Counted from the first letter of the whole stretch, positions 5,532 to 35,550 are shown. The stretch: 62,978 nt of DNA, filler included, from Hyphochytrium catenoides (GCA_900088475.1; 9 parts of 9 records of this genome joined end to end with filler, not necessarily neighbours in it), one strand, 5' to 3'. The notes: generated from the letters alone by a model not told the origin. A program made the numbers and translations.

Positions 5532-6383
5532 CTAGACAGCGGCCGGTGACAGCGGGAGCAGCCGTCTCAACCCCGTCGTCCGATTTAGAGAATATCGTTG
5601 CAGAAGACCCATTTCCAATTGCTGCACCACTGTCTTGCTCAGAGATATCAGATCTTCTTGCTGCTGATGTGTGAAGATCGGCCATGACTTTGAATCAGCT
5701 ATAAAGAGTGAACCTATTCGGAAACCCTCCCTTGTAACTAGTGGGGTTGCGGCGTAGAAGCGGACATGCGGTGGCCCTTGAACACCGGGATAGGACGAGA
5801 GTAGAGGATGTTTGGACGCATCCAGAACAACAAAGGGGTCATCGGACCTCAGGACGAACTGGCAGATGGTATTTTCGCGTGGCGCTTCGCAGAAGTCTAT
5901 ACCCTTCTTTGCCTTGACCCATAGTCTCTGATCGTCAATGAAACAGATCCCGCACATTGGTGCCTTGAAAAGTTGAACCGCCAAATGGACGATGCGTTCG
6001 TAAGGCTCTTCAGGGGCCGTGTCCATTATATGGAGAGACTTTAGCTTTGCGACTCTTGCCACCTCAATTCGAGAGATCAGCTGATTTCGACTGCTACAGT
6101 TTCCCGGACAGTCGCAGGTGAGATCGCAGCGGGAAGGGGGTTTCACCGTTCGCGTTGCCTTTTCATCGCCAATAGTGCTGCCTGTCTTGGACATGCCGCC
6201 CATAGGTAGGTTGAATGATAGCGAGCGTTTTGTTGGAAAGGGCTGGACATCAGAGGATGGTAGGAAGCATTCTGCTGTGAGGCGCATAGCATCGTGACAA
6301 GAAGGTCCTACTACTTTTGGCCGTGATAGGGGAATGTTGTTCGACAACAACAGTGGAAGGAGGGAGGAGGTCTCGTTCGGCAT
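5532..6383 (-). CDS. Stand-alone GAF-domain sensor protein, intronless, 283 aa
   Basis: Classic GAF signature: IMDTAPEEPYERIVHLAVQLFKAPMCGICFIDDQRLWVK...PRENTICQFVL...VVLDASKHP...GPPHVRFYAATPLVTREGFRIGSLFIAD; no output domain before the stop. Confidence 0.9.
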   Translation of the reverse strand: MPNETSSLLPLLLSNNIPLSRPKVVGPSCHDAMRLTAECFLPSSDVQPFPTKRSLSFNLPMGGMSKTGSTIGDEKATRTVKPPSRCDLTCDCPGNCSSRNQLISRIEVARVAKLKSLHIMDTAPEEPYERIVHLAVQLFKAPMCGICFIDDQRLWVKAKKGIDFCEAPRENTICQFVLRSDDPFVVLDASKHPLLSSYPGVQGPPHVRFYAATPLVTREGFRIGSLFIADSKSWPIFTHQQQEDLISLSKTVVQQLEMGLLQRYSLNRTTGLRRLLPLSPAAV

Positions 6384-9264
6384 TCTTTCAAATACGAAGG
6401 CTGTTGGTGATCAGCGTCTTGTTGTTAGTGGTGGTGGCTCCGTTCGTTGTTGCTGCTAGTCCGCCCGCCGGCGTGTCTCTTCTTGCTTGATGAGGAGGAT
6501 TTTTATGAATGATGGGCGGAAGAAAGAAGTCGGCTCTCCGCAGAGGATGGGCGAATAGATCAAGTAGTAGAGAGACACCGACGAATAGAGAGACATCGAC
6601 GAATGAGGAGAAGAAGGACCAGGATGGACGACAAGCTGACGCTGCTCGGCCCATCAACCTGCCCTGCCCTGCCCTGCGCTACTACCACCTAGAATAAATA
6701 TGAGACAGCAGCCGCTCCACCAGGGCCTTGTCGTCGGATGATGGCGATGAACGATAATAATAAAAAAAAAAAGCCGGAACGGGAGTAACGTAGTAACAAG
6801 ACATAGATTTCGGTGTTGGTGTCGACATGCTCTGCTGCTATTCTTGGGTGACCAGGAAGATGGGGATTATTAGCTGGATTATTTACTACGGAACAGGGCT
6901 GTTCCTCATTGTGGACAACGAGCAGGCATCAGTCGAATGTAACGACCACCTTCGCCCCAATTCCTATACCTCTTTTATTTTCTTCGATCGGATTTTACTT
7001 CTATATTCCTTATAGGGGGGCCTGGAGCTGTAATAATTAAGGGTTTATGTTTTTCCTTTGTTGTAACTCTTGAGTGCGGTAGTTTCGATATAAAAAACAA
7101 TGTGGCACGACCCTTCACGTCTCTGACTGTTGGTCTTCGTAGTAACAATAGAAACAACTCAACGCGCCATCGTCGTCGTCAAGTGGCGGAGCTCGTCTAC
7201 CAGTAGCAGCAAGTGCTTCTATCTACTACTCTAGCATCCTCCTCTTCTGTAGGGAGGTAAAGTGAGAAGTAAGCTCCTCCGTTGCTGCTCACCTTTGAGA
7301 GCTCCTCGCTCTATCTACTACATCATCACCATCATCGTTCAAATAAACAAGGTAGATACAGGTAGTAGGCAGGTGATGAGGATGAGAAGCAGCAGCATGA
7401 TAATAATAATAGGAGGACTCTATAATAATACGGATGACGTGCTAACTAACATGCATCATCGTCATCTTCTCCAAGCTCCGTCTTTTTACATTCTCTCTTT
7501 CTACAAGGAGCAGCTTCTTATTATTAGGCCCTCCTGCTGTCTTGTCTGATGATGAATGATGTTATAACGAAGAGCGAGAAGGAAGAGGTCGTTTCGCAGC
7601 AAAGACGGCGAGGAGGTGCTGGGCGCATCATTAACTCAGGACAACAACTACTGCTGCATCCAAAGAGTCGGCTTATATACTTTGTTAATATCATCTCACC
7701 TTCTTCTTCGTCGGTATTAACAACACCTTGTGACTAATGGAGGAGGGTCATCAACAATGGCCAAGCTCCTCTTCTTCTTCTTTCCTCCGGAGACTGGTCA
7801 CAAGCGGTACAATTGTCCCTAAATAACGAAGGAGAATGCAACTCAGAGCATTGCTGCTGCATGACCACTGCTCCATCTTGCTGCAGAACCTGGGTATGAT
7901 GTATTATGCTACCATCATCTTACGACGACGACCACTACTACCAGCAGATTGAGTTATTATCAATGAGCAGTGCATAGAAGAGTACTAACCTACAGATGCT
8001 GCTGCTAACCGTCTAACAATATTGCCCACCAATGGCCCTGCCATCATTCATTCCTCATTCTTATATATATGAAACCTTCGGCCCGACCGAGAAGCTTGAA
8101 CAAACGTGCTTACCGAGAGGTAGGACAAGGGAGCCTATCGCAACGCAACCAGGTCGCAAAGTAGCTGAAGTATAAAGTAGTTGATGCAAAGTTGTGCGCA
8201 GAGTCAGAGTCAACGCTAACAACCCTGCAACCTTATTTATCATGCATCATCTTATTACTATTCTATTGGCCTATAAGGCGGCGTTGTCGTTCACAATAAT
8301 AAAGAGGAACAACTCAAGCATCATCATCTGCTAATGCTCCCAACAAGCAAATGGATCAGCTTCGAAGAAGCAGTATCGTATCTGCACCTAGGCAGTCCAA
8401 GATGACACCGGGTCTTTGGGCCCATCTTGACATTCACCTTTCTGCTTACTTTCTCTATAACACTTACCATGCTCTTTGATTTTCCTTCAACAGACTACGC
8501 CCACCCTGAGCCCTTCGCTGCCCAGACCTCATGCTTGTAAACCATGGAAGATGTACTTTCGAACCACAAGAACAACTAAAGCCTGATTCATCATGTCGCG
8601 GTCGCTGACTATAGACTGTTGTGTCGTGGAACTTGGCGAGCTGCAGCTGCGAACTTCTGACAAGGAGCTCTCCTTCTACCACGAGGTCCCACCACCACTA
8701 TTAAGCTTCAGCAGATTGCACCTCCCACCACCTTCCACGTACTCCTTTCATCGTAGTCATAGCAACCTAACACATCAGACGCATCACTTCTAAATCGACC
8801 TGTTCTGTGCGGCCGAACACTATGCCCAAAATGATGGGTAGGCAGAATCTCTGGAGTAGCTGAAGACTGCTTCTTAGGTAGTACTGAGAAGAAGTAAACG
8901 GAAGAAGAGAATACTTCTTATTAGCAATCAGCAGATAGCATTATCCCAGCATCATCAACATATCAAACTTTTTGCGTGATGTATTGAGCGGCATGCGCAA
9001 GAGACGCATCGGTAGACAACTTCGATCCTGCTGCCCAGTATACCTCAGGGCGAACAAGGTTCTTACAGAAGTTTAGTTTTGCTGATCTTCATCAATCAGA
9101 ACAAACAACGTACATGGCATCGACATCGCTCAGGCGACTAATAAAGAATGCTTGATAGACAGGACTAGGGTTATCTTCATCAATTATTAGTTCGATTATG
9201 TGATACGAGTGAACAGAGTCCTCCCCTTCCTTCTGATAAAGACTGCAGGTCTTCTTACGCTGGC

Positions 9265-20548: not shown

Positions 20549-20649
20549 NNNNNNNNNNNNNNNNNNNNNNNNNNNNNNNNNNNNNNNNNNNNTTAATTAA
20601 TTAANNNNNNNNNNNNNNNNNNNNNNNNNNNNNNNNNNNNNNNNNNNNA

Positions 20650-22308
20650 AGCAGACGTCAACACCTTATCAATGTCCAAGTTCCCGCCGCTGCTTTCATG
20701 AGTGGTATCTCAGTCTCGCAGAGTCAGCAATTCCACGGCCTATCATCCATTCGTCCCTTGTCGAACAAGACAGCTAGGCGGGGTGTGGAAAAGACAAAGA
20801 AGGCAATCCAAAAGGAAGTGAATAAGGGCCTGGCAGAGAGCCGCGAGGAGTCTAGGGGCAAAGCAACATCTTTCATCACAGTGCAGACAAGAAGCGGTCT
20901 CACTGTCGAGCTACCAGAGATTACTGTGTCAGTCGATGGCGTCTACAGCACTAGAAGTACAAAGAGCAACATGGCACGCTCAAAGTCGATGGCCGTTGTC
21001 GCAGTTGACGCCAAGACCCACAAGCCGGTGGACCTACGCGTGTTTTCAACTTACTGCGCGAAGTGCGTTTACAGCGCAAAGAAGCGTGGGACAACGAAGC
21101 ATGATGGAGTGTGCAATAGGAACCTCTACGGAAGCATATGCACAGGAGAATCTAAGGCTGTGGAGTCTATTGCAAAGGAGCAATACGAAGGTCTCAAGCT
21201 CTACATTAAGCAGATTGTCTCTGATGGGGACCTGAGGACTCAGGCAGCGGCAAATGCAGGCTCTGATCATCATATAGGTAGGATACCATGTAGTGCACAC
21301 GCAACCAAGTGCTTGGCTGGCGCGCTTATCAAAGGATCGACAGAGATGAATGTTTCTCGACACCTGACAGTAGGGCGCTGCAAAGCCATGGCCAAGGAAG
21401 CCCTTCTTTGCGTTGGTGGGCTTAAGGGTATCTCCATATCGGACCCAGACTTCGACAGTCATGTGCAGAATGCTAGGGATCAGGTCATAAATATTGTGGC
21501 CCATCACTGCAACGATCACACTTCATGCTCTGTCTCCTTTTGCGAGTGGAAGAAGATGCAGAAGGACAAGCCCCAGTACTCTGTCCACGAGCTAAATCGG
21601 CGATACTGCCCACGCTTCCCTCCTCTGAACCTTACGGAGGAGGAGAGGAGAACCCTTACTCAGGTATTTGCCAGGGAGATAACGGAGGAAAGTGCGCACC
21701 TTCTAAGCCTGGAGATGACCACGAATGATAATGAGAGTCTCCATTCCGAAGTAGCAAAGATGACCGGAGGGAAGCGCCTCTGCTACACAAGAACGGATTC
21801 GTGGGAGGTGTGTGTGGCTGTGGCTGTGCTATCAAGACTGTCGTGGACCTGGGAAGAGCGAGTGTTAAGCACCCTGGGAGTTCCTGAAGACTCAGTGGCG
21901 AGAGGAGCGTTCTATCAGAAAAGGAATCACCTCAGAAAGTACCACAAGGACTTCAAGAAGCGCGACGCCTATAAGCAGCAGCGGAGGGATGCGAGAAAAC
22001 GGCAGGATCGCAGCCTTGAGACTGTGGCTGACGAGAATCTTAACTACTCTACCAATATTGTCTCTCTTAGTGGTGAAGCCAATGGTCTCGCGAAGCAACG
22101 TATACCGACTCCTGCGAGCACTACAAAGAAGCGGAAGAGGGTGCCGGCCGCATGTAAACGTTGTGAGTCTACGTCTCATCGCACGAATAAGTGTGACTTT
22201 CTCGGTGGTGGAGGAGTTCAGCCACTGAATAAGAAGGAGAAAAGACCCAGGAAACGAGTTGATGAGATTGACATGAGCTACATTATAAAAAACAATCTAC
22301 TAAGATAA
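20650..22308 (+). CDS. Kolobok/Mutator-like DDE transposase, 5'-truncated, with C-terminal CCHC knuckle
   Basis: Frame is open from the gap (SRRQHLINVQVPAAAFM...). Motifs ITVSVDG, STYCAKC..H..CNRN..GS..GES, IVSDGD, CSAHATK, HHCNDHTSC...FC, TTNDNESLHS and CKRCESTSHRTNKC; no stops or frameshifts. Confidence 0.88.
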   Translation, partial: SRRQHLINVQVPAAAFMSGISVSQSQQFHGLSSIRPLSNKTARRGVEKTKKAIQKEVNKGLAESREESRGKATSFITVQTRSGLTVELPEITVSVDGVYSTRSTKSNMARSKSMAVVAVDAKTHKPVDLRVFSTYCAKCVYSAKKRGTTKHDGVCNRNLYGSICTGESKAVESIAKEQYEGLKLYIKQIVSDGDLRTQAAANAGSDHHIGRIPCSAHATKCLAGALIKGSTEMNVSRHLTVGRCKAMAKEALLCVGGLKGISISDPDFDSHVQNARDQVINIVAHHCNDHTSCSVSFCEWKKMQKDKPQYSVHELNRRYCPRFPPLNLTEEERRTLTQVFAREITEESAHLLSLEMTTNDNESLHSEVAKMTGGKRLCYTRTDSWEVCVAVAVLSRLSWTWEERVLSTLGVPEDSVARGAFYQKRNHLRKYHKDFKKRDAYKQQRRDARKRQDRSLETVADENLNYSTNIVSLSGEANGLAKQRIPTPASTTKKRKRVPAACKRCESTSHRTNKCDFLGGGGVQPLNKKEKRPRKRVDEIDMSYIIKNNLLR

Positions 22309-22326
22309 TAGAGATTGATTTGCCCT

Positions 22327-23946
22327 CTATGATGCAGCTTTTTTAAAATGGGTGTATATGCCATCAGGTTCAGGCCACTTCTCTCTTACTGCTTTAATCA
22401 CACAGGGAGGAAGGTCTTTCCGATTCCCTTGGCCTCTTACATCAAAGACATTGGTGCTGTACCAGTAGTAGGCTATATGTCTCCTGTGACCTAAAGGCAT
22501 GGTGGAGCAGTCGTCAGCATCTTTATAGGAATCTTCTACAAAAGGGCATTCATCCCAGATGCGACGCACGTCGTCGGGCAGTGGGTATAGAGCCATCACA
22601 CAGTTAGTGAAGTGCAGAAATGAAGTGGAGCAGTACGCTCCATCGCATATACCACTGAATTGCTCTGGTGTCGGGGAGGGAGGAAGTTCGACTCTACCCG
22701 CCGTCCTCGAGGATTTGGCACCAAAGCTGGCGGTATCGGGGAATACGTAAGCGACGGGTAGCTGCTTCTTGCAATGATCTAGAAGAGGGCCATCCTCCCA
22801 AGTAAAGTCCAGAACATTAATCACCTTGTACGTTTTATCATCCTTAGTATAGATGATTGGAGCGTATGTTGTGATCACCATCAATCGCTTCTTAGGTTGA
22901 TAAGCCTCTCCAAGCTCGAAGTCGTCAGGCAGCTCTCGAGTAACCTTGCTTAACATCTGCGAAGCCACTCGACCATTTAGGAGGCTTTCTCCATCAGTGA
23001 GCTGTAGTTGTCTGATCTTAAAGTTCCTGCGTCGGGTTCCGACTGCGACGACAGGTTCAACGACCAGCTTCACCACATATAGACGTAGCTCTTTGCTCTC
23101 AGTAGTCAGAGCCGCATCCTCTGATGAGGTAATGAAGGTCCTTATAGATCCTGGTATCACTCCGCACTTATGTAAAAGCTGCATGAAGCGCTGTAATAGA
23201 GGTATGCAAGAACGGTGTTATTGAGAGGAAGACCATGCCACACAATTGAGTACCTCTTTGTCCGTGTGATGTCGTGCTCTTGGGGTTCTCGTCGCAGACT
23301 TTGCCGACTCTTTTAGTTGTCGAGGAGTACTCTTCTTGAGCCTTTTGAAGGTGCCACTGCTAGTGCCATCATTGGAGCCCTTGACTTCCTTTCGCTGCGC
23401 CTTATTACGCTTCAGCTTAGGAGTGATGCTAGTAATATCACAAGTCGCAGTGGCATTGGTTACTCTAAGTCTCATCTCATTAGCAGTGACCAGGGTAGGG
23501 CCGCTTTCACCGCCGCCGCCGCTTGTTGGTGGGCTTAGGAGAAGGGACGATTCCCGAACCAGAGAGTTACTTGGACTAGGAGAAGATGACGGTATTATGA
23601 CTTCTTCTGTTCCTCTTCTCAATCTTGATGACGCCTCATCCTCTTCAGTCCCACCAGAAGAAGCGGCAAAATTAGTAATGAGGTCTTCAGATATGCCCAT
23701 TTCCTGTGTCAGGAAAGTAGCGAAGAAACTGAAGGCGGTAGAGCTTAAGATAAGTTGGGGATGGCCACGAAGGAGGTCTAAGAACTGCCGGAGCTTCAGA
23801 GCCAGGTCATCGAGAATCGCTGCTTGTTTGTCAGATTTGGTAGCGCGACGCTTCTTCTGCCCTGCAGCAGGAGGAGCTCGAGCGCGTTCGGGACTGGACG
23901 ACGGTGCCTGCCCTCCACCATCATGTTCTTTTTCTTCTACCATCAT
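22327..23946 (-). CDS. KolX / P2X7-ballast-like accessory protein with putative OB fold; two exons (23946-23254, 23190-22327), about 518 aa
   Basis: A 63-nt GT..CAG intron (23253-23191) joins the two ORFs in frame. C-terminus RRHIAYYWYSTNVFDVRGQGNRKDLPPCVIKAVREKWPEPDGIYTHFK fits the ballast/KolX pattern R..AY...G.GNR..LP.C....R..P...G.Y..FK. Confidence 0.8.
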
Positions 23947-24595
23947 GAGACAGCACGGACAGAGACACTGGAAGAAGGATGATGATGAAGACCCCTGCTA
24001 TGACGGACGAAGGTCTCCATCCCACAGCATCATCGCACGAAGAGAGAAGAAGCTTGACTTTTCTCGTCTGAGTCGTGTGAACACGAGCACTTGCTCAATC
24101 GGCAATGATGAGCAGAAAAGCGCGGGAGATCACCTTATGACCCAATTTATTCATTTTTGTACCGACTAAGCAGCGACAATAGGTATCCTCAAGCCACCTC
24201 AGGCCATCCAAAGGGGTTTCTCATTTCTCCGAGACACCCCCTCATAGTCGAGCTTTTTCTAGAGCTTACTTTTTTAATCTAGGATAAGCCAGAGAGGTGC
24301 CTTACCCTAAAACGATTAAAAGACGGTTAGAGGGACTATAGGGTCCAGATTCATCACTTGTCACCAAATTTACAAAAGGGGCGTCCACCTTAACCACTGT
24401 TGCTTTTCCCAAAACGAATAAAAGGTTTCCTAGAAATATTGGGCAGCTAGCATGACACATTTCGAAGGTTGGCACGCCTTCCCTAAACCCCTTGAACAGT
24501 AAGATACCTTAAGGCGCAACTCACAAAACCTATGATCTCATTAACAACCGCCTAAGGGGGAACGGAATTACTGAAACGGCGAGGAGGGGCCCAGA

Positions 24596-24792
24596 ATAGA
24601 GAGAGAGAGAGAGAAGAAGAGAGAAAAGAGAGAGAGAGAGAGAGAAAAAGAGAGAGAGAGAGTTGAGACAGAGTCTTTAGAAATGTTCGGAAGTGAAAGA
24701 GGAAGGGGGCAGACAGAGAGAGAGGGAACTGGTACTAAGGAAGAGACATGGATGAGGTTGGGAACATTTGTAGGAGGAAAGGAAAGGAATGG

Positions 24793-24851
<59 letters not shown>

Positions 24852-25163
24852 AACCTTTTTGAAGCGGCTCCTGAAGATCATGACGACTGCCACTCAGCTG
24901 ATCGTAAGACAAGAACTCAAAGACGCCATTCATCATTTTCCCCCGCCTTTTGCTCTCTTCACTCGCTCTGTCTCTTCTCTGCCGTACTGCAGTCCTTCAC
25001 TGTCCTTCTCTCTTTTTCTCTTTCTCGAAAAAAAGTCTCTCTCCTTCTTTGAAGCCATTGATCTTAGGTTGCCCCTTTTCCAAATGTCTCCTGGGTTTGT
25101 TGCCCTTGAGGTTGGGACATTACGACAGAAGCAAAAGACAGTTTGTTGACAACAAGACTGCGT

Positions 25164-25215
<52 letters not shown>

Positions 25216-26092
25216 TTCTCTTTTTCTCTCTCTCTTCCTCTCCGTCTCATCTTTCTATCCTTCTGTCTATCGTCTCCCTTTATTTTGCGCAAACCTTTAT
25301 GTCTTCCCTTACTGGCTCTCTTACCGATCAGTCTTGCCGCAAGATCCCTCTTTGTTCTTCTTTTGGCTATTGAGGTTGTGATCTCTCTCTCTCTTTCTCT
25401 CTCGCCTCCCTCCCGTCTCTCTCTCTCTCTTTGTCTCTCTCTCTCTCGTTTTCGGATCTCTTCTCTTGTGTACACGTCTTGCCCGTCCTTCAACTTCAAA
25501 CCTTGCCACAGGATTATTACGACAGGAAGGGCGCATGGAGCTCTTCTAATCATGAAGGGGAGAGAAGACACTGGCTGAGAGAAAGAGAGAGAACGAAGAG
25601 AGAGAAGTATAGATAGATAGATAGGTAGATAGATAGATAGATAGGGAGAGAGAGAGAGAGAAAGAAGAGGTTGTTCGTGCTTATTTTGCAGCCAAGGAAG
25701 ATATGACATCCGATTTCCTCCATTCGTAGCTCGAATGCCCCAGTTTCTTCTCACTTCCTCTTCTCTTCTCTTTCTCTTTCTTTTCTCTTGTTCTTTCTTC
25801 TCTCTCTGTCTCTCTTTCTTCCTCTACCTTCTCTTTCCCTGTTGGCTGTCTCTCCCTCTTTCTCTGTCTCGCCCTTCTATCTCACTTCTCCTTGTCCTGC
25901 CTGCACTTCCGACGCTCTCACGTGATTCTGTCTCTTCTGTTTTGGACACTAAACTGAATTAGACTCATGGCTGTTGTTTGTCTCTTGTCCCTCTCTCTCT
26001 CGCTTTTGCCCCGTCCTGTCTCCCTTTCCACCTGCCCTTCTCTTTATCTCCTACCCAAAGCAGGAGAGAGAGAGAGAAGAGAAAGAGAGAGA

Positions 26093-26154
<62 letters not shown>

Positions 26155-26314
26155 GGAAAAAGGAGTCAAGAGAAGGGCAGAACTTCAGTTTAGACGCTGC
26201 GTGTGCACTGAGTTTGTACCCGCGAGCGTCAGATTGTTGTCCGCCGCCTAGTTGCGCAAGAAAGGGAAGACAAGGAACGAAAGAGAGAGAGATTGGTGGC
26301 AAAAGAGGAAAAAC

Positions 26315-26353
<39 letters not shown>

Positions 26354-26514
26354 GAAAAAGAGGCTGGGATTATCTTCCTGTCTATTCCTCTCGTCGGACT
26401 TATGGGCGTAGAGTGGTGGCTGCGCAGGTGATGATCTTCAGGTGATGAAGGAGCTTCTTTGTCCTTCCCTCCATCATCGTCACATTGTAAATTTGAGCTC
26501 CTGCTCTGAACTCA

Positions 26515-26555
<41 letters not shown>

Positions 26556-27060
26556 TCTCTCTGTGTCTCTCCCTATTTTTCTCTTCTTCTGCTTTCCACT
26601 GCTTTTAGCGAATCTCTGCCTCTCCTTCTCTCCTTTTCTCTTCTCGTCTTTTTCTACTACTCTGGCTCCACTAAAAAGTCGCCTTCATTCGTTAAGAAAC
26701 ACACTTTCTCTCTCTCACTCTGTCTCTGTGTGTCTCTCTCCCCAAGGTGTCTCTCCTCTCCCTTTCCCTTCTGCTTGCCCACGTCTGGCTGGAAAAGGAT
26801 GAGAAGGGCGATGAATCAGCCTAGTCTTGCATTCTCCTACTATCTCTCTTTCTCTTCTCTTCTTTCTCTCTCTCCCTCTCTCTCTCTTATTTCTCTTTGT
26901 CTCTTGCCCATGTTGTCTTCGTCTGCTCCTTTCCGGATAGGAGAGAGCTTCTTCTTGCCTTTCTAATCCCTCATCATTCTCCAAATTTCTCTCTCTTCTC
27001 CACATCCATCAGGAGAAGAAGAAGACAAAGCCTCGCTGCCTACGTGAAAACGAAAGAAAG
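24596..27060. repeat. Dense (AG)n/(CT)n and (AGAT)n microsatellite region; such tracts fill most introns and intergenic DNA in the window
   Basis: Long perfect dinucleotide runs, e.g. about 24793-24846, 25166-25211 and 26096-26150; AGAT run about 25608-25643. Confidence 0.95.
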
Positions 27061-27129
27061 GAAGAGAAACTCTTTCTCTCTCCTCCTCAACATTTAAAAG
27101 CAGCAAGGAATAATCCAACGAAAAGGACA

Positions 27130-27380
27130 ATGATCAGCCTAGGAAAGACAGCTCTCTTGAGCTTTCTCTCTCTCTCTTTCTCTCTTTCCTCTCTCTCCTC
27201 TCTCCCGCGTGCGGTGGAGGCGCTGGCTCCTGGTCCTAAGGATGTGACTGCAGTGCTTTTTGAATGGAAGTTTGAGTCGATCGAGAGAGAGTGCGAGAAA
27301 CTAGGGAAGCTTGGCTATGGATTTGTTCAAGTCTCTCCTCCTCAGGAGCATATCCAAGGCTCCGAATGGTGGTAAGTGAA

Positions 27381-27432
<52 letters not shown>

Positions 27433-27620
27433 AAAGCAGGAAATAGAAGAGCTTAATGAGAGAAGAAAACAATGATAGAGAGAGACAAAAGGTTAGAGGG
27501 GCTATTTTTCTTCTTCGTTCGTATGTTCCTTCCTCTTGTTCTTTCTCCTTTGTCTTCTTGCTTAAATTAATGTCTCTCTCTCTTCTTCTTCCTCCTCTCT
27601 CTCCCACGCTCTTTCTTTCT

Positions 27621-27656
<36 letters not shown>

Positions 27657-28887
27657 CTTTCTCACAAAAAGGACGAGTTACCAGCCTGTGAGCTATAAAA
27701 TCGCGGGGCGCCTGGGTGACCGTGAGGCCTTCAAGAAAATGGTAGATACCTGCAATCGTGCCGGCGTAAAAATCATCGCCGATGCTGTTATCAACCACAT
27801 GTCAGCAGGGGGCCGCGGGGCTCCAGGAACTGGAGGATCCCCGTTCACAAAGTATAACTACCCTGGTATCTACCAGGACCAAGATTTTCACCGCTGTCGA
27901 TCTAACATTGAAGGTGGCGATTATACCAGTAANNNNNNNNNNNNNNNNNNNNNNNNNNNNNNNNNNTCTCTCTCTCTCTCCCTCCCTCTCTTTCTTTCTT
28001 AGGGCTTGTTCCTCTCTCTCAGAGTTTGCTGCTCTCTCTCGCTCTCTCTTCGTTCCTTGGCCTCTTCTTGCCCAATGAACAGATCTTCTTCTATATTTTG
28101 TTAGTACTTTTACCTCTTGCTGCTGCCTCTTTATTTCCCATCATTCATTCTTCTCTACTTCTCTGTTCTCCGTAGTCCCTTCTTGCCCTCCTCATCTCTT
28201 CTTCTCACTCTCTTTGTCTGTCATCTTTGTCCTCTCTCTCTCTCTCTCTGCTTCTCTTTTCCCCACCGATCTTCTCTCTCTCTCTCCCATTCCTCTCTCT
28301 CTCTCTTTCACCCAGGAAACCGCCAGCGCGTCCAGGAGTGCGAACTTGAAAGCCTGGCCGACTTGGACACGAGCTCCGAGTATGTCCGTCAACGGATTGC
28401 GCAGTACTTTAATGACCTGCTCGACCTGGGCGTCACCGGCTTTAGGGTGGACGCGGTCAAGCATATGGCTCCTCAGGATCTGGCTGGGATCAAGGCCAAG
28501 ATCAAGAACCCGAGTGTTTATTGGGCACAAGAGGTGATCTTTGGCGCGGGAGAGGCGATCAAGCCTGAAGAGTATCTGGGCACGGGAGAAGTTCAAGGTA
28601 ATAATTGACGCATCCTTCTTCAAAAACAATGGAATTAGGGTACAATGCCAGCAAAAAGGGAGGAAAAAGAAAGTAGAGCAGTAGTGATGAAGTAGGCAAT
28701 AATGGAGAAGAGAGGAGAAAAGATAAACGAGAAAAAAATGGAAGGAGGTGAGAGAGGCCGCAATAGTAATAAGAGAGAAGTCGAAAGTAGAGAAGAGCGA
28801 GTTTTCAATAGTGGGAGATAGAAAGAGGAGGGTGGTGGTCTTCTGCCCTATTCAGAACCTGGATCCAAGCTCTCTCTCCTCTCTCTC

Positions 28888-28920
<33 letters not shown>

Positions 28921-30072
28921 TCCGCGCTTTCTTTCTCCTCCCACTTCATCTCATCACTCATCCCTTCACACATACTGACATCATTCTCACTTCTCCTCAA
29001 TGCAGAGTTCCGCTACTCTACGACTCTGAAGGCTGCCTTCCAGCGTACCGACCAAAAGCTCGCCAACCTCAAGAACTTTGGTGAATCGTGGGGCTTTCTG
29101 AAGAGCGAACAGGCCAACGTCTTCGTGACCAACCATGACACCGAGCGCAACGGGATGACGCTCTCCTTCAGAGACAACAATCGTTACACTCTCGCCCATG
29201 TTTTCATGCTTGCTTGGCCGTATGGGACGGCGGGAGTGCACTCCGGGTACGATTTTTCTCAGAGCAACACGGGCCAGGGGCCGCCCAACGGCGGGACGGT
29301 CCGGAATTGTCACCAGGACGGCTGGCAGTGCCAACATACCTGGCGGCCGATCGCGAACATGGTCCAATTTCGGAATGCCGTCCGAGGAGAGCCGGTAACG
29401 GACTGGTGGGATAACGGGCAGCATGCGATAGCCTTCGGTCGGGGCCGGAAGGGCTTTGTTGTCCTAAACAATGAGGACGGTCCTATTACACAGGTGTTCA
29501 AGACCAGCCTGGCCCCTGGCCGGTATTGTGACGTCCAACACGGAGATGTGACCGAAAGTGGGACCTGTTCCGGACCGACGGTCGATGTTGACGCTAACGG
29601 CCAGTTCTCGGCCACGGTCCCGGCCCAGGAGGCGATTGCCCTTTATCGGATGATCGGCGGCTCTTCCTCCTCCCCTGTCTCTCCCTCTCTCTCTCCCCCG
29701 GCAGGTCCGACTTCTTCTTCTCCTTCTCGTCCAACGAGTGCTCTTCCTCCTCCGGTCACGGGAGGAGAAGGAGCGTCTTTCTCGGTGAGAGCGGAGACGA
29801 AGTGGGGAGAGAACCTCTTCCTTGTGGGGAACATACCCGAGCTTGGCAGCTGGAACCCTTCTCTCTCTCTCCCACTCTCTCCCTCTTCTTACCCTGAGTG
29901 GAAGGTGGATGTACCGCTTTCGGCAGGGAAGAAGTTCGAGTACAAATATATCAAGAAAGAAGAGAGAGACGGAAAGACGACCGTCACCTGGGAAGGAGGA
30001 GAGAACAGAGTTGCGATTGTCCCTTCACAAGGAAGTAAGCGAGCAAGACTAACGGACACATGGCGCAGCTAG
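27130..30072 (+). CDS. amy: Secreted GH13 alpha-amylase (actinobacterial type) with C-terminal CBM20; exons 27130-27371, 27672-27928, 28316-28597, 29006-30072
   Basis: [50 protein letters not shown]; catalytic [12 protein letters not shown] and VTNHDTER; CBM20 [22 protein letters not shown]...FEYKYIKK...WEGGENR. Splice phases are consistent. Confidence 0.95.
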
Positions 30073-30951
30073 ACAGAAAAAAGACAATTCACCGTGAGAG
30101 CAAAGGAAAAAGTGAGAGAGACTGGCCTCATCCTTCCCTTCCTTTATTATCTCTTCCGTTTCTTTCTGCTTCTCCTTTTGCCACTATTTGTTTCCATGCT
30201 TTCTCTCTTTAATTTTCTTATGCTTTTTGTCTGACTGAAGCTTTCTCATTGTCTTTTCCCTTGGAAAAAGAATGGAAAAAGTCTAATGCTCTCTTAATGC
30301 TTTTCTCCAAAAAGATTGTTTTCTCTAATGATGATGATAGAGCTAATGAAGGAACTTTCTTATCTTTCTATCAATAGCGTCTCTTCTTTCTCTTGTCTCT
30401 CTCTCTCTTCCGTTCTTCCTCCTCCTCTCTCTTTCTTCTCCCTCTTCTGCCTTTTGGCTTCTGCGTTTTCTCCCCTGTTAATTCTCTTCTCTCTCCTCCT
30501 GCTGCCTTTTTGGTTCTCCTCGTATTGGCTCTCTCTTGGCTTGTTTGGTTCTTTGTGTCTTTCCTTCTAGCTTGGAGACGGAGGGTAGTAGAGGACAGAG
30601 AGATGGGGGCCACACAAAGAGAGAGAAAGAGAGAAGAGAAGAAGTCCAAGAAGAGATTAGAGGGTAACAGAGGACAGAGAGATGGGGCCACACAGAGACA
30701 GAGAAAGAGAGAAGAGAAGAAGAAGAAGAAGAAGAGAGATAACAAAAGATGAGAAAAGAAAGAGGACGGGAGCTCGGGAAGTCGGGAAAGAGGAAGGAGA
30801 CGAAGAAGTTATGAAAGAGTCAACCAAAGCGCTATTAAGCAAGCTCATTATGTTCAACTTCTTCCTTCTAGAATATTAAGTTAGTCAAGAGATGATGAGA
30901 GAGCTTGACTTTGTCTTTCTCTTCTTCTTCTTCTTCTTCTCTCTGTCTCTG

Positions 30952-30982
<31 letters not shown>

Positions 30983-31004
30983 CCTTCTCTCCCCGTCCTC
31001 TTGT

Positions 31005-33476
31005 TTATCTTCGGCTAGATGCAGCCGCTAGCTCCACCAGCTGCTCCACCTCTTTCTCACAGCTAAAGCCTGTGAAGCCATCCTTGCACTTGCAGCCAGA
31101 AGGGAGGCACTCTCCTCTTCCTCTGCAACTCTCAGGACAGACCTTTGAGCTTCCAAAAGAGAGAAGAGTCGCATCAGAGAGCACATCTTGTCTCTCTTCT
31201 CCCTTCTCCAGCACGTTTGCCGTGATGGTGGCGGACACAACTCGATTGCATTCTCGAATGTATGCCACCTTCGCGCTCTCGATAACGGACAAGTCACCGA
31301 CAGCCATGGCATCGCCGACGCAGAGAGCGTCGATGAAGAGAGACTCAAAGTCTTCCACATACTTGTCACATAGAGGAACGCTCCTGATTGCCTCCGCACA
31401 GACCGCACGGATGGCCTCTTTATCTAGTGAGGAAACGGAAGAGGAAGAGGCAGACGCGAGAGAGACTGTCTCTTCCTGTCGCTCTCCGTCAGAAGAAGAG
31501 AGACCACGAAGCTTAGACGAAGGAGAAGGGCGAAGGCTTGTATAGTTCCTTACAGGAGGAGACAGAGGCCCAGCGCCAAGTTTCTCTATCTTCTCATATC
31601 CCTTATGCAGGAGAGAGACGTCCTCAGAAGAGAGAAAACTCAAGTCATCTTCAGAGAGAGAAGAGACAACCTCTTGACAACCATCATTGATGCAGGAGAA
31701 GAGCGCGTCATTCACTTTATGAAGAGCGGCCAACTTTGCGGCGTTCCTCTCATCATTGTCCATATTGCCGTCCCAATTTCCTAGTAAACCGGTCGTGGAC
31801 GGATCCTTAAAGGCCGGGGACAGCTGAACAGCGACGTTGAGATGCGGATAATCAAACGCCGTCCACCTGCTGCAGAACACGTCCACATAGGTCGCCTGGT
31901 CCGCCTCAATAAAGATTCGGTAGCCTTCCGACCGGCGGCCGGCTAATTTCTCAATGGACAGCGCTCGGGTCGCTGACGTCGTTGGCGTTCCAGTTGAATA
32001 TAACAGCTTCCCCTCCTCAGTAAGCATCATTCGGACAACCGCAGGTCCGAAGCTCACAGCGACGCCCTGAATGCAACTGGGCGCCTTGTCCACACCACGG
32101 CCTATCGGTCCACATTTCTCCTGATAGAGATGGACCTTGAGGTTCTTGGACTCGAGTAGGCGGTAAAAGCCGGCCTCTTGGAAGTCAAATGTTAGGCCGT
32201 CCAAGGACCGGAAATGTGGATCGCCGTTGGCTTGACCGATCACGTTGCCTTTGACTTTGCGATTCAAGTCGAGTTGCTGCGTGCAGAAAGCAGACGTGCT
32301 GGATAGCCAATCTGCACGGACTTTGATGGTGTTTGACAAGATCTGTCCTTCCTTATCCGTGGTCGGACCGGTTGTCGAGCGAACCTTGAGCGCCTGGCAT
32401 TCCTCGTCGTCCGGACCGCCAAACGTCAGCTTCTTCTTGTCGAAAACCACGGCGTCGGACCCTGAAAGATGAACGACAACCTTCTTCTTCTTCTTCTCGT
32501 CGTCATTCATGGCGTTCTTTCCTCCAGGGCCAAGGCAGATCTTCCCTTTCAACACCTCGCCATCCACGAGGCAGTCCGGACAGTCTTTGGGGCCGTCGAG
32601 TTTTATCTCGAGAAGGTCGGCCGGGCAGGTCGGTGCTGGTTGACCGACCACCACTGGCCGACGATTGAGCGGAATCCGAGCATTCTGCGGAGGGTTCTTG
32701 GGATCGTTGGTGACCGATCCTCTGTATAGTCGGATATTGTCCACATCGATCGTCCCGGTAACGCCACCGCGGGTCAGGACCCAGAAGTAGATCGTGGACG
32801 GGACCTGACCGCCCGCGGGCACCACGGTCGAGAAGAACCGCCACTGCTGGTAGGTTCCTGGTTGAATGTTCTTAATATGATGATACGTCCGTGTCCCATT
32901 GCCCCAGATAACGTCGATGTAGAAGCCGGCAATCGCGTTATTGGCAGGGATGACCAGGTTCTCTGCCCGGAAGTAGGCGCCAAACGAGAAGGTTGAGGAC
33001 GGCGCAGCAGGAGAAGAAGAGGCAGACGAAGGAGACAGAACGGGATCGACGCGTACTGTTGGCTCCTTTTCTTCACCTTCTCCTCCTCTTCCTCCTCCTC
33101 CCCCCATGAGATCTCTCTTCTCTTGCTCAGTGAGGACCAGAGTGGTGAAGAAGCCATGGTCGTCTCCTTTTGTTGCCTCATTGCGCGAGACAGAGAGAGA
33201 GAGAAACTTGTTGCCGCTGTTGTCAGTAGAGAGAGAATAGCCTTTCCCATGGATCCACCAATAATCGGTGCTTTCAACGGTGGGATTCTTCACGATGTTC
33301 GTGGCTTGCTGCCCAAGGGTCCTCAGATTATCGGCGCCCACGATCGCACCAGCAGGCTTGGCCGTAGCCGTCGTAGTATTCTGTTGACCCGCAGTGAGAC
33401 GAAAGAGAAGGGAGGAGGAGAGGAAGAGGGAAGAAGAAAAGAGAAGAGGGAGAGAGAACAGTCGCAGTGGAGCCAT
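31005..33476 (-). CDS. Secreted protein, intronless, 823 aa: CBM-like beta-sandwich, von Willebrand D domain, C-terminal EGF-like domain
   Basis: Signal peptide; GDPHFRSLDGLTFDFQ and GLLGNWDGNMDND (vWD); CPESCRGRGECLPSGCKCKDGFTGFSCE (EGF); N-terminal ...GTIDVDNIRLY typical of galactose-binding-like folds. Confidence 0.8.
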   Translation of the reverse strand: MAPLRLFSLPLLFSSSLFLSSSLLFRLTAGQQNTTTATAKPAGAIVGADNLRTLGQQATNIVKNPTVESTDYWWIHGKGYSLSTDNSGNKFLSLSVSRNEATKGDDHGFFTTLVLTEQEKRDLMGGGGGRGGEGEEKEPTVRVDPVLSPSSASSSPAAPSSTFSFGAYFRAENLVIPANNAIAGFYIDVIWGNGTRTYHHIKNIQPGTYQQWRFFSTVVPAGGQVPSTIYFWVLTRGGVTGTIDVDNIRLYRGSVTNDPKNPPQNARIPLNRRPVVVGQPAPTCPADLLEIKLDGPKDCPDCLVDGEVLKGKICLGPGGKNAMNDDEKKKKKVVVHLSGSDAVVFDKKKLTFGGPDDEECQALKVRSTTGPTTDKEGQILSNTIKVRADWLSSTSAFCTQQLDLNRKVKGNVIGQANGDPHFRSLDGLTFDFQEAGFYRLLESKNLKVHLYQEKCGPIGRGVDKAPSCIQGVAVSFGPAVVRMMLTEEGKLLYSTGTPTTSATRALSIEKLAGRRSEGYRIFIEADQATYVDVFCSRWTAFDYPHLNVAVQLSPAFKDPSTTGLLGNWDGNMDNDERNAAKLAALHKVNDALFSCINDGCQEVVSSLSEDDLSFLSSEDVSLLHKGYEKIEKLGAGPLSPPVRNYTSLRPSPSSKLRGLSSSDGERQEETVSLASASSSSVSSLDKEAIRAVCAEAIRSVPLCDKYVEDFESLFIDALCVGDAMAVGDLSVIESAKVAYIRECNRVVSATITANVLEKGEERQDVLSDATLLSFGSSKVCPESCRGRGECLPSGCKCKDGFTGFSCEKEVEQLVELAAASSRR

Positions 33477-35550
33477 TGCTCTTCTTCTCGCTCGTGTTCT
33501 TCGCGCTGAACACCGAGAAGAGGGAAGAAACGGGATAAGAGAGAGTGTGTTTGTGGTGCAGATAGCGTTCTATTATGTGGTTTGTTTCCCGGGATTGGCG
33601 GTTTTGAAAATGATGATGACAACCCTAGTGNNNNNNNNNNNNNNNNNNNNNNNNNNNNNNNNNNNNNNNNNNNNTTAATTAATTAANNNNNNNNNNNNNN
33701 NNNNNNNNNNNNNNNNNNNNNNNNNNNNNNGACAGAGCACCTTCTCTCTCTCTCACTCTCTTGAGATCTGCTTCAGTCTCTCCTCTTGAGATCTACTGCA
33801 TCAGATTCTCATACTACACGCCGAGTATGAGGAGGAAGAAGACGTCGTAGAGCCATAGTTAACAGCAGGTAATAAGAATAAGCTGGTCCCCAACAAAGCC
33901 TAGCAATGCCTGCAAGAAAATGAAGAAGATTTGCTCTAGCAATGCCTGCAAGAAGCCGTTCACATAAAAATGAAGAAGATTTGCCCAGCCGCAGAAGAAG
34001 AAGAACGACGACGCCCCCAGAAGAAGACCAGCGGAGGAGAAAGTAGTTCAGTCCGCCTAGTAGAGCACCCAGCATGCCTCACACGTCACCTTTGCTTTTT
34101 TGATATCATAAGAAGGGTCTGGGTAATAAGGTAACTTCTTGTACTTAACAAGAAAGTTGTTCTTCCTCCTCTGGATTCATGTCCTGGTGCTATTAGTAGT
34201 AGAAGCGCCGACCAACATTTACAAAGAAGAGGGATAGAGCGGTGTTACTCCACTATCAGTAATAGCAGGGCGGGGACCACCACCACCTACATATTATTTA
34301 TAAAGAACTGGATGGAGGAGTCTCTAGTCGGTACCCGGAAGAAGGGACAGAAGAGGTTCTTTATGATGACTACTATTGTCGGACCACCACCCAGGACGGG
34401 AGCCAAGTAATAAGCAAAGCATGGATGATGATGGCCGCCGCGCGCCCTACTTCCTCTGCATTATTATTAGTTAGTTTGCTGCTGTGTAGATGAATAATGA
34501 TGAAGGCGGTGGCGGCGATCGGCACCACGAACCCCACAGCCTACTGCCAATGATGGCGGTGATGTCGCTTTTTTGTGTAGTGATGATGATAGCGTCCGTG
34601 GTTCTCACTCTATCTATTCGTTTTCAGTTCTTTCCATCACGATGATGATCATGCTCCTGCATCAAGCCGCTGTAAGTACTAGTAATTAATAATCGAAGGA
34701 ACTCCTGTTCTTCTGTAGAACTAAAAGCCTGCAGCCCGCCGTCCTTGTCCGAATATGTCCGGAAGTGGTGTTGGCTGAGGATGGCCGTTAGCGGTAGGAA
34801 ATGTGTTTTCCACCCTTCATCAGAACTTTCAAACACGAACGCAGAGACTGCACTGGAGGCGCAGCAGCAGCAGCAGCAGGCTGTTCGTTCTGATGATGAT
34901 GACAGGCCCCAATGAATGATGATGGTGGCAGAGAGGAGAGGTTTCTTTACCAACTGCACGAGGCAGGGTCAGTGACCGTCTTCTTGATTTGGAGCTCCCA
35001 CATGCTTCTTCTTTCTTCCTGGTCGACATTCCCACCGTCCCCGCTGCGCAGGCCTGGTGTCAAACCCCTGGGTGGTGGCCTTACTGGAGTGTAGACTCAT
35101 TGAGGGATCAGAAGCCAACTCTAATTGCCGCCCCTGCTCTAGAGGGAAGGTGATCATATATAGAGATGATAGTGCTTTCATGATGTCTATTGACGTAGTG
35201 TTGCTTTCCTGTCACACCCAGACGGTAGATGTGTGTGCGTAAAGAAGCGTTGGCTTAGCATGCCAGGGCGTAGGTTGTGGAAGGGGGGAAAGAGATTGCT
35301 GATGCAACGTCCTTTGCTGGTGCATCGTTGTCCGCGAGGACTTTAATGGAGGACGCGCAGTGCAACCCTGAATCAAGCTACAAGTGCTGTTGCCACAGAC
35401 AGTGAGCTGAAACAAAGAAGGTGCAGAACCGCTTAAGAGTGGTTCTCTCCGGTCTCAACGGAGATCTACAACTCTTGTTCTGCTCTCCTTAAAAAAGCAG
35501 CGCTTGACTGGCCTCCCTATCCATAACTCCGAAGGTTTCTATTATTGAGG

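Follow-up and report, generated by a model that had tools for sequence, protein, structure and literature searches.

The window analysed here, a 62,978-nt stretch of Hyphochytrium catenoides DNA (GCA_900088475.1; nine parts of nine records joined end to end with filler), contains at positions 22327–23946, on the minus strand, what is very probably the accessory (second) gene of a multi-copy cut-and-paste transposon of the Kolobok superfamily. Its product joins a homologue of RPA70N, the N-terminal oligonucleotide/oligosaccharide-binding (OB) fold of RPA70, to a reduced form of the ballast domain known from P2X7 and KolX, and may act by recruiting other proteins. The right-hand side of the element lies in the window: a cut transposase gene, the accessory gene convergent with it, terminal sequence and a TTAA (Table 1). 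The two-domain protein is the standard architecture in a large unannotated lineage of two-gene elements from protist and environmental genomes.

Table 1. Features of the transposon copy in the window (positions counted from its first letter)
Feature	Position	Strand	Remarks
Kolobok-type DDE transposase gene	20649..22308	+	5' part beyond the edge of the piece; stop codon 22306–22308
Exon 2 of the accessory gene	22327..23190	-	287 codons plus stop; encodes both folded domains
KolX/P2X7 ballast-like domain	22330..22695	-	Exon-2 residues 166–287
RPA70N-like OB domain	22771..23160	-	Exon-2 residues 11–140; N-terminal helix, b1–b3, helix, b4–b5
Predicted 63-nt intron	23191..23253	-	GT 23253–23252, AG 23192–23191; in-frame TAA 23220–23218
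Exon 1 of the accessory gene	23254..23946	-	231 codons; basic, Ser/Thr/Ala-rich; runs KKRR and KRLKK resembling nuclear localisation signals
Terminal region upstream of the accessory gene	23947..24389	.	About 440 bp; inferred right terminus ...GGGGCGTCCACC at 24389
TTAA beside the inferred terminus	24390..24393	.	Likely target-site duplication, from sequence and contig ends

The preliminary description had read the middle of the protein as an OB fold of the RPA70N type, and two structural aligners and a family profile agree in placing RPA70N first. An AlphaFold2 (AF2) model built with 150 aligned relatives (predicted local distance difference test (pLDDT) 74, predicted template modelling score 0.71) yields an OB barrel over exon-2 residues 38–133, composed of b1 (38–46), b2 (57–65), b3 (70–75), a helix (77–86), b4 (102–116) and b5 (119–133); this predicted order of strands and helix is that of the canonical OB fold, and confidence lies at 83–90 from b2 onward. 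When the model is compared with the PDB by Foldseek, the top matches are nearly all Rfa1-N/RPA70N, with probabilities up to 1.0, and TPP1, TEBP-beta and Est3 are interspersed among them. VIA-align ranks RPA70N first (Z 8.2 over 107 aa, 3.5 Å), followed by Rfa1-N (7.6), TPP1 (7.3), RADX (7.0), TEBP-beta (6.7) and Est3 (6.5). A profile of the OB-domain family (alignment A3, 54 members) matches human RPA70 residues 5–89 with an E-value of 4.4e-4, plus 12 further RPA70N entries, and reaches yeast Rfa1-N at a non-significant E-value of 0.7–0.9. The profile alignment with RPA70 begins at a shared N-terminal helix, LS/T-x-G-[AF], and the match as a whole can be regarded as weak but specific. The aspartate D66 of the LTDG turn in the window protein is conserved in at least 90% of relatives and invariant in alignment A3. 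Scanned singly, three of 61 relatives match Pfam Rep-A_N (PF04057; best E 8.5e-4), and a language-model feature search of a protein atlas returned weak leads that all belong to OB families (POT1, RPA, CDC24_OB3, tRNA_anti-codon). Taken alone, the window protein is matched in Pfam only just by P2RX7_C and not by Rep-A_N, and the case therefore rests on family profiles and models. On these grounds the OB domain is judged to be a divergent RPA70N homologue and not merely a generic OB fold. The protein is no RPA70 orthologue, because only one OB fold is present, a ballast domain follows it and the DNA-binding domains (DBDs) A, B and C are absent.

RPA70N is the protein-recruitment domain of RPA and binds short acidic/aromatic helices of ATRIP, RAD9, MRE11, p53, BLM, WRN and ETAA1; the titles of the PDB entries matched by Foldseek show RPA70N complexes of this kind. 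The OB folds of TPP1, Est3 and TEBP-beta are mainly protein-binding as well. The preliminary description had proposed that nucleotide sensing is coupled to the binding of single-stranded DNA (ssDNA) or to the recruitment of repair proteins. Since these nearest OB folds chiefly bind proteins, docking or recruitment is favoured over high-affinity ssDNA binding. Alternatively, the OB domain could be a true ssDNA binder comparable to RPA DBD-A/B or SSB, which would cover or shield ssDNA or hairpin intermediates formed at the ends of the element and be regulated by the ballast domain. ssDNA-binding OB folds (RADX, Teb1, RPA DBDs, SSB, POT1) are indeed numerous in the VIA-align list, the protein is basic and some relatives carry an N-terminal SAP DNA-binding motif; yet these folds stand lower in the list (Z 5–7) than the protein-interaction folds named above, which also provide the best profile matches, RPA70N itself binds ssDNA only weakly, and aromatic residues that could stack on ssDNA were not identified in the OB domain. 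On balance, a true ssDNA binder is unlikely.

The ballast is the cytoplasmic domain of P2X7, defined as ZCD and represented in Pfam by P2RX7_C, PF20478 (Rump et al. 2020, PMC7016195); it also forms part of KolX, which Kolobok transposons of the Kol0 lineage encode as their second protein, and the ballast fold has been published (PMC9587614). The earlier claim that the window protein ends in a ballast motif holds in that P2X7 is the sole profile and fold match, and needs qualification in that the motif is reduced and lacks its first Cys cluster. P2RX7_C is the only Pfam family found in the window protein, over its last 47 aa, and is matched by 19 of 61 relatives scanned singly. A ballast family profile (A5, 139 sequences) searched against the PDB finds P2X7 alone, at residues 489–593 (E 8.2e-8). 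In the whole-protein model, the sole match outside the OB folds is rat P2X7 (6u9v_A), where model residues 166–286 align with chain residues 471–595 at Z 6.0 (106 aa, 18% identity). Modelled alone (pLDDT 89.8), the ballast domain again has rat P2X7 at the top with Z 5.9, the runner-up reaching 3.3, and P2X7 provides six of the top 14 Foldseek matches, with query-normalised TM-scores of 0.40–0.48. A feature search of the atlas with the C-terminal domain alone gave no match.

The canonical ZCD has seven to eight Zn-coordinating Cys in three clusters, PxWCxCx2C, LCCRx3GxCITT and LPSCC (PMC7016195). Compared with this definition, the window ballast has five conserved Cys (C182, C187, C197, C215, C263): cluster 1 is missing, cluster 2 is retained as C182-x4-C187...C197, and cluster 3 persists as the single C263. 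Motif 3 of the canonical domain is retained as LPPCVIKAVREKWPEPDGIYTH, the R-H..AY motif is retained too, and the LPPC..WPEPDGIYTHF tail is present. The nucleotide contacts R546, H547 and R578 of rat P2X7 have their equivalents in R237, H238 and R269, and R237 and R269 are at least 90% conserved across the family; the equivalents of R574 and K583 are I and E, so that, of the five P2X7 residues in contact with GDP, two lack a counterpart. Judged by its residues, the window ballast is a reduced variant of the canonical domain, which has probably retained one Zn site and may still bind nucleotides.

A HMMER search of 1.84 billion representative proteins recovered 214 relatives at E <= 1e-3, 25 of them at E <= 1e-10, and all 214 matched only residues ~160–287 of exon 2. 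When 60 of the longer relatives were aligned, the region ahead of the ballast proved to be shared as well, with the pattern LT-x-GF...L, P-x-LQV, vDGD, l-s-x-Ln, G..i.l..f.p.y, a.l.v..f.vvG. The long relatives contain both domains, and the two-domain architecture is therefore a trait of the family and not of a single locus. A SAP motif (PF02037, E 1e-8) precedes the OB-ballast part in one relative (L003:777-1346) and in one member of alignment A1. A SAP motif was also considered for exon 1 of the window gene and rejected, as Pfam yields nothing there beyond a sub-threshold HipN match.

The preliminary description assigned the gene to a Kolobok-type transposon as its accessory gene and proposed a search for the same pair in other genomes. 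All four relatives looked up show a tail-to-tail pair with the same type of transposase, as in the window. In L001 (an 83-kb contig), L002 and L003, the gene is followed by a convergent PF20700 transposase, and the partner in L004 (L004–L006) is a 738-aa open reading frame (ORF) with HxCNxH, TTN..ES and CCHC-knuckle motifs, a homologue by these motifs. A metagenome scan with a conserved 48-aa block found 28 loci, and a hidden Markov model made from five of these transposases detected a convergent transposase ORF 36–405 bp away in 17 of the 22 metagenome loci that have at least 600 bp downstream. The gene pair thus recurs at more than 20 independent loci. No convincing pair of terminal inverted repeats (TIRs) was found in L001 by a TIR search. 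L017:5518-10359 is a complete 4.8-kb element in which both genes lie within perfect 457-nt TIRs, with the termini 5'-GGCGAC...GTCGCC-3' and TTAA on either side. The 100% identity of these TIRs suggests a very recent insertion. They contain internal 50-nt subrepeats (5699–5748 and 5879–5928), and the separation of the L017 accessory ORF (6136–6975) from its ballast match (7001–7144) suggests an intron or a frameshift there.

The transposase of the window, an ORF at 20698..22308 in a frame that stays open back to the edge of the piece, matches Pfam PF20700, 'Mutator-like transposase' (E 1e-20, profile positions 84–357 of 357); a word-index protein search with it gave no match. Its motifs are, in order, the D in VSVDGVYSTR, a CCHC finger, the D in IVSDGD, a CxxH signature (CSAH), the Zn finger HHCNDHTSCSVSFC, the E in TNDNESLH and a C-terminal CCHC knuckle. 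Kolobok transposases have a C/DxxH signature, a zinc finger between this signature and the catalytic E, and optionally a CCHC finger after the first D, and the elements are characterised by TTAA target-site duplications, 5'-RR...YY-3' termini and TIRs (PMC9587614). The window transposase has this set of motifs, and its catalytic motifs resemble the aligned Kolobok examples of the same study. Because these motifs and the TTAA and GG..CC ends of L017 fit the hallmarks, the element is assigned to the Kolobok superfamily, as far as motifs and ends can tell. 'Mutator', the name carried by PF20700, was rejected as superfamily label, the ends and motifs being of Kolobok type. By our own count, 12 of the 15 listed differences between copies in the transposase core are at third codon positions, which suggests purifying selection on this core.

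In the tails of the partner transposases, a CCHC knuckle is followed by a basic run and then by a short [LIMFV][LIMFV][DN]W motif, which is often repeated at the extreme C-terminus. The motif occurs in the tails at 12 of ~18 distinct loci (L007, L010, L014, L016, L017, L018, L020, L022, L023, L025, L030 and L034).

The gene model of the accessory gene agrees with the spliced 518-aa reading of the preliminary description, and all strings quoted there (LYVVKL, KIRQLQLTDGESLLNGRVASQMLSKV, LMVITTY, KVINVLDF, the Cys cluster and the ballast tail) are present. In the translated window, two minus-strand ORFs, 23946..23218 and 23184..22327, share the same frame; joining 23946–23254 to 23190–22330 after removal of a 63-nt GT..AG stretch gives 231 + 287 = 518 codons. 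The composition of exon 1 (36 K/R against 27 D/E) bears out the basic, low-complexity N-terminus noted before. Apart from the HipN match mentioned above, the Pfam scan recognised no domain in exon 1, and the N-terminal arm of the protein is probably disordered. In three host DNA runs, the dominant copies of the element differ from the window by 1–3%, and by up to ~5% over exon 1. One nucleotide at 23220, within the predicted intron, is missing from these copies, whereas the indels in coding sequence (at 23122 in exon 2 and at 23523 in exon 1) are 3 nt each and keep the frame. Among the indels listed, beside which 22 further indels exist, the sole frame-breaking one falls in the predicted intron, and this is the only evidence for the intron.

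A further alternative is that the window copy is decaying and that the 518-aa product is an artefact of joining, with either nothing made or only the 285-aa ORF that starts at the ATG at 23184; the latter protein, expected if the intron is retained, would still contain the OB and ballast domains. No RNA run holds the stretch, the copy diverges by 1–5% from the dominant ones, exon 1 is without a recognisable domain, and some relatives are only ~280 aa long. In contrast, the two ORFs are intact and share one frame, canonical splice sites bound the intron, the one listed indel whose length is not a multiple of three lies in the intron and those flanking it in coding sequence are multiples of three, and most long relatives have ~100 or more residues ahead of the OB domain. 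Decay of the window copy is accordingly rated as rather improbable, more so than ssDNA binding.

The element itself is delimited on the right only. The accessory gene ends 18 bp from the end of the convergent transposase gene, and the right end in the window reads ...CACC-3'. High-depth multi-copy contigs of the host end at the inferred terminus, with loose ends at 24395, and a contig of unique depth, free of differences, starts at 24364, 30 nt ahead of the base that directly follows the TTAA (24394). The right terminus was placed at 24389 because of these contig starts, the loose ends and the change in depth. GA/CT microsatellites obscured the outcome of a search for inverted repeats in the window, and the element's left end lies beyond the piece. 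In the three host DNA runs, contigs over 20649–24390 are ~5–9x deeper than the flank contigs. Since the element contigs are both deeper and different, the element is multi-copy and the window holds one diverged copy. Several host contigs break or diverge at 24198–24202, in the terminal region, which may reflect subfamily heterogeneity or internal rearrangement. The idea of a host or domesticated gene that merely lies beside a transposase remnant, outside any mobile element, draws on the earlier domestication of ballast-domain genes, i.e., P2X7 and Nanor (PMC9587614), on the partial view of the element in the window and on the ordinary host genes next to it, but is largely refuted and highly improbable given the multiple copies of the region, the repetition of the convergent pair at over 20 independent loci, and the enclosure of both L017 genes by perfect TIRs with TTAA duplications.

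Several observations weigh against the interpretation as a transposon-encoded RPA70N-ballast protein with a docking role. In the OB domain, the b1 region is poorly modelled (pLDDT 42–54), the best Foldseek E-value is a weak 5.5e-3, and Pfam Rep-A_N finds no match in the window protein alone at E <= 1. The basic cleft of RPA70N (human R31, R41, R43, K88, R91) is without clear conservation in the profile alignment: of the cleft positions, that of R43 is the only one with a basic residue in the family consensus, and R53–R55, K58 and R60 of the window protein are near the cleft residues but off the aligned positions. For the ballast domain, the P2RX7_C match of the window protein alone is borderline (23.6 bits against a cutoff of 23.5), the Foldseek E-values are above 1, and the loss of cluster 1 and of two GDP contacts counts in the same direction. 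The tail of the window transposase (22240–22305) has the acidic-hydrophobic sequence VDEIDMSYII and lacks a W-containing motif. The left end of the element lies beyond the edge of the piece, so that its TIR pair and intactness cannot be read from this piece, and no RNA run that could bear on expression or splicing contains the stretch.

For the accessory protein, the RPA70N-like domain would serve, as in RPA70N, as a docking site for short acidic/aromatic peptides. It could bind either a repair or replication factor supplied by the host or the conserved acidic/aromatic tail at the C-terminus of the partner transposase, in which the [LIMFV][LIMFV][DN]W motif is a possible ligand. The ballast domain would contribute a module that is stabilised by Zn and may bind guanine nucleotides, and together the two modules might connect the transposition complex with repair or replication of DNA where excision or insertion takes place. 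A more far-reaching and doubtful proposal is that an entire lineage within the Kolobok transposons encodes an RPA70N mimic that docks on its own transposase tail or on host checkpoint and repair proteins, with the ballast as a Zn/guanine-nucleotide switch. If so, the element could direct repair to the breaks it makes or dampen checkpoint signalling, and the ballast domain that P2X7 later captured would have its first functional context.

ZCD/KolX proteins have been described as short and 'without other conserved domains', and the N-termini of ZCD proteins as 'without obvious homologs'. The window protein resembles them as the product of the second gene of a Kolobok-type element with a C-terminal ballast, in the LPxC-x3-[IV]R-x2-[FYW]P-x5-Y and R-H..AY motifs, in the second Cys cluster and in a fold like that of P2X7 471–595. 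It differs in the RPA70N-like OB domain ahead of the ballast, in the absence of PxWCxCxxC, with five instead of seven to eight conserved Cys, and in the replaced R574 and K583 equivalents. A cnidarian P2X7-like cluster of the atlas is 175 aa long. Compared by eye, the window ballast comes closest to two KolX-like second proteins from piggyBac families, piggyBac-2_GrCh_2p and piggyBac-14_PI_2p (Data S6, PMC9587614), which likewise have a reduced ballast without most of the canonical Cys and share the strings ICxGxxC and R..AY...G.G.R..[IL]P.C...[IV]R..WP...G.Y..FK; in contrast, they are under ~180 aa long, contain no OB domain and are encoded by piggyBac elements.

With RPA70N (DBD-F, PF04057), the OB domain shares the topology, the LS/T-x-G-[AF] helix, the P-x-LQV strand, the SDG/vDG turn and the L-x-x-Q/s-L-N helix. 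It differs in its low identity (12–16%), in lacking DBD-A/B/C, in its fusion to a ballast domain and in being encoded by a transposon. Replication or repair modules as transposon accessories are also represented by the RPA-like proteins of Helitrons and by other accessory proteins (Kolobok DnaQ and lambda-type exonucleases, RecQ, His-Me nuclease). The Helitron RPA-like proteins resemble the ssDNA-binding DBDs and not the N-terminal protein-interaction domain, and to our knowledge none of these accessory proteins is joined to a ballast domain.

The fusion of an OB domain with KolX had been presented as new. No description of it was found in searchable full texts (KolX; Kolobok with RPA or OB-fold), and this part of the claim stands; a peculiarity of this locus it is not, since the architecture is lineage-wide. 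A shape search of the atlas returned separate P2RX7_C and RPA clusters and none combining both, and the window protein had no match in NCBIfam, in a single-sequence phmmer search against the PDB, or, for exon 2, in the word-index protein search. The OB-ballast fusion is a conserved, apparently undescribed variant of a known accessory protein, and full-length KolX proteins in Repbase may hide a divergent OB domain.

The KolX/P2X7 ballast has a solved structure and no known biochemical role outside the receptor. Its regular fusion to an RPA70N homologue beside a Kolobok transposase would place its ancestral function in the DNA transactions of transposition, with the transposase tail and RPA70N-type peptides as concrete candidate partners. 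The fusion also adds a type of accessory protein to the Kolobok superfamily and shows that Kolobok elements with a ballast occur not only in animals but also in protist and environmental genomes. Furthermore, the label 'Mutator-like transposase' of PF20700 covers elements with Kolobok hallmarks.

The element lies in a piece of the window (20649–33630) that consists of eukaryotic DNA with abundant GA/CT microsatellites. Very long (GA)n/(CT)n tracts at 24590–26700 and in many intergenic and intronic stretches generate spurious SLSL/ERER 'ORFs' and dominate repeat searches. A multi-exon alpha-amylase gene lies at 27130–30072 on the plus strand and encodes a catalytic domain, a C-terminal beta domain and a CBM20 starch-binding domain; CT/GA microsatellites fill its introns, and the assembly has a gap of N near 27930–27965. 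On the minus strand, at 31005–33476, an 823-aa ORF combines a hydrophobic N-terminus resembling a signal peptide with a von Willebrand D domain and a C-terminal EGF-like module, and its product is probably a secreted or adhesive host protein. Three soil or unspecified metagenome runs hold small shares of the window, and another run, from a 2024 rhizosphere metagenome, contains two 151-nt contigs identical to it (22178–22328 and 22445–22595); the host or a near-identical element thus seems to occur in soil.

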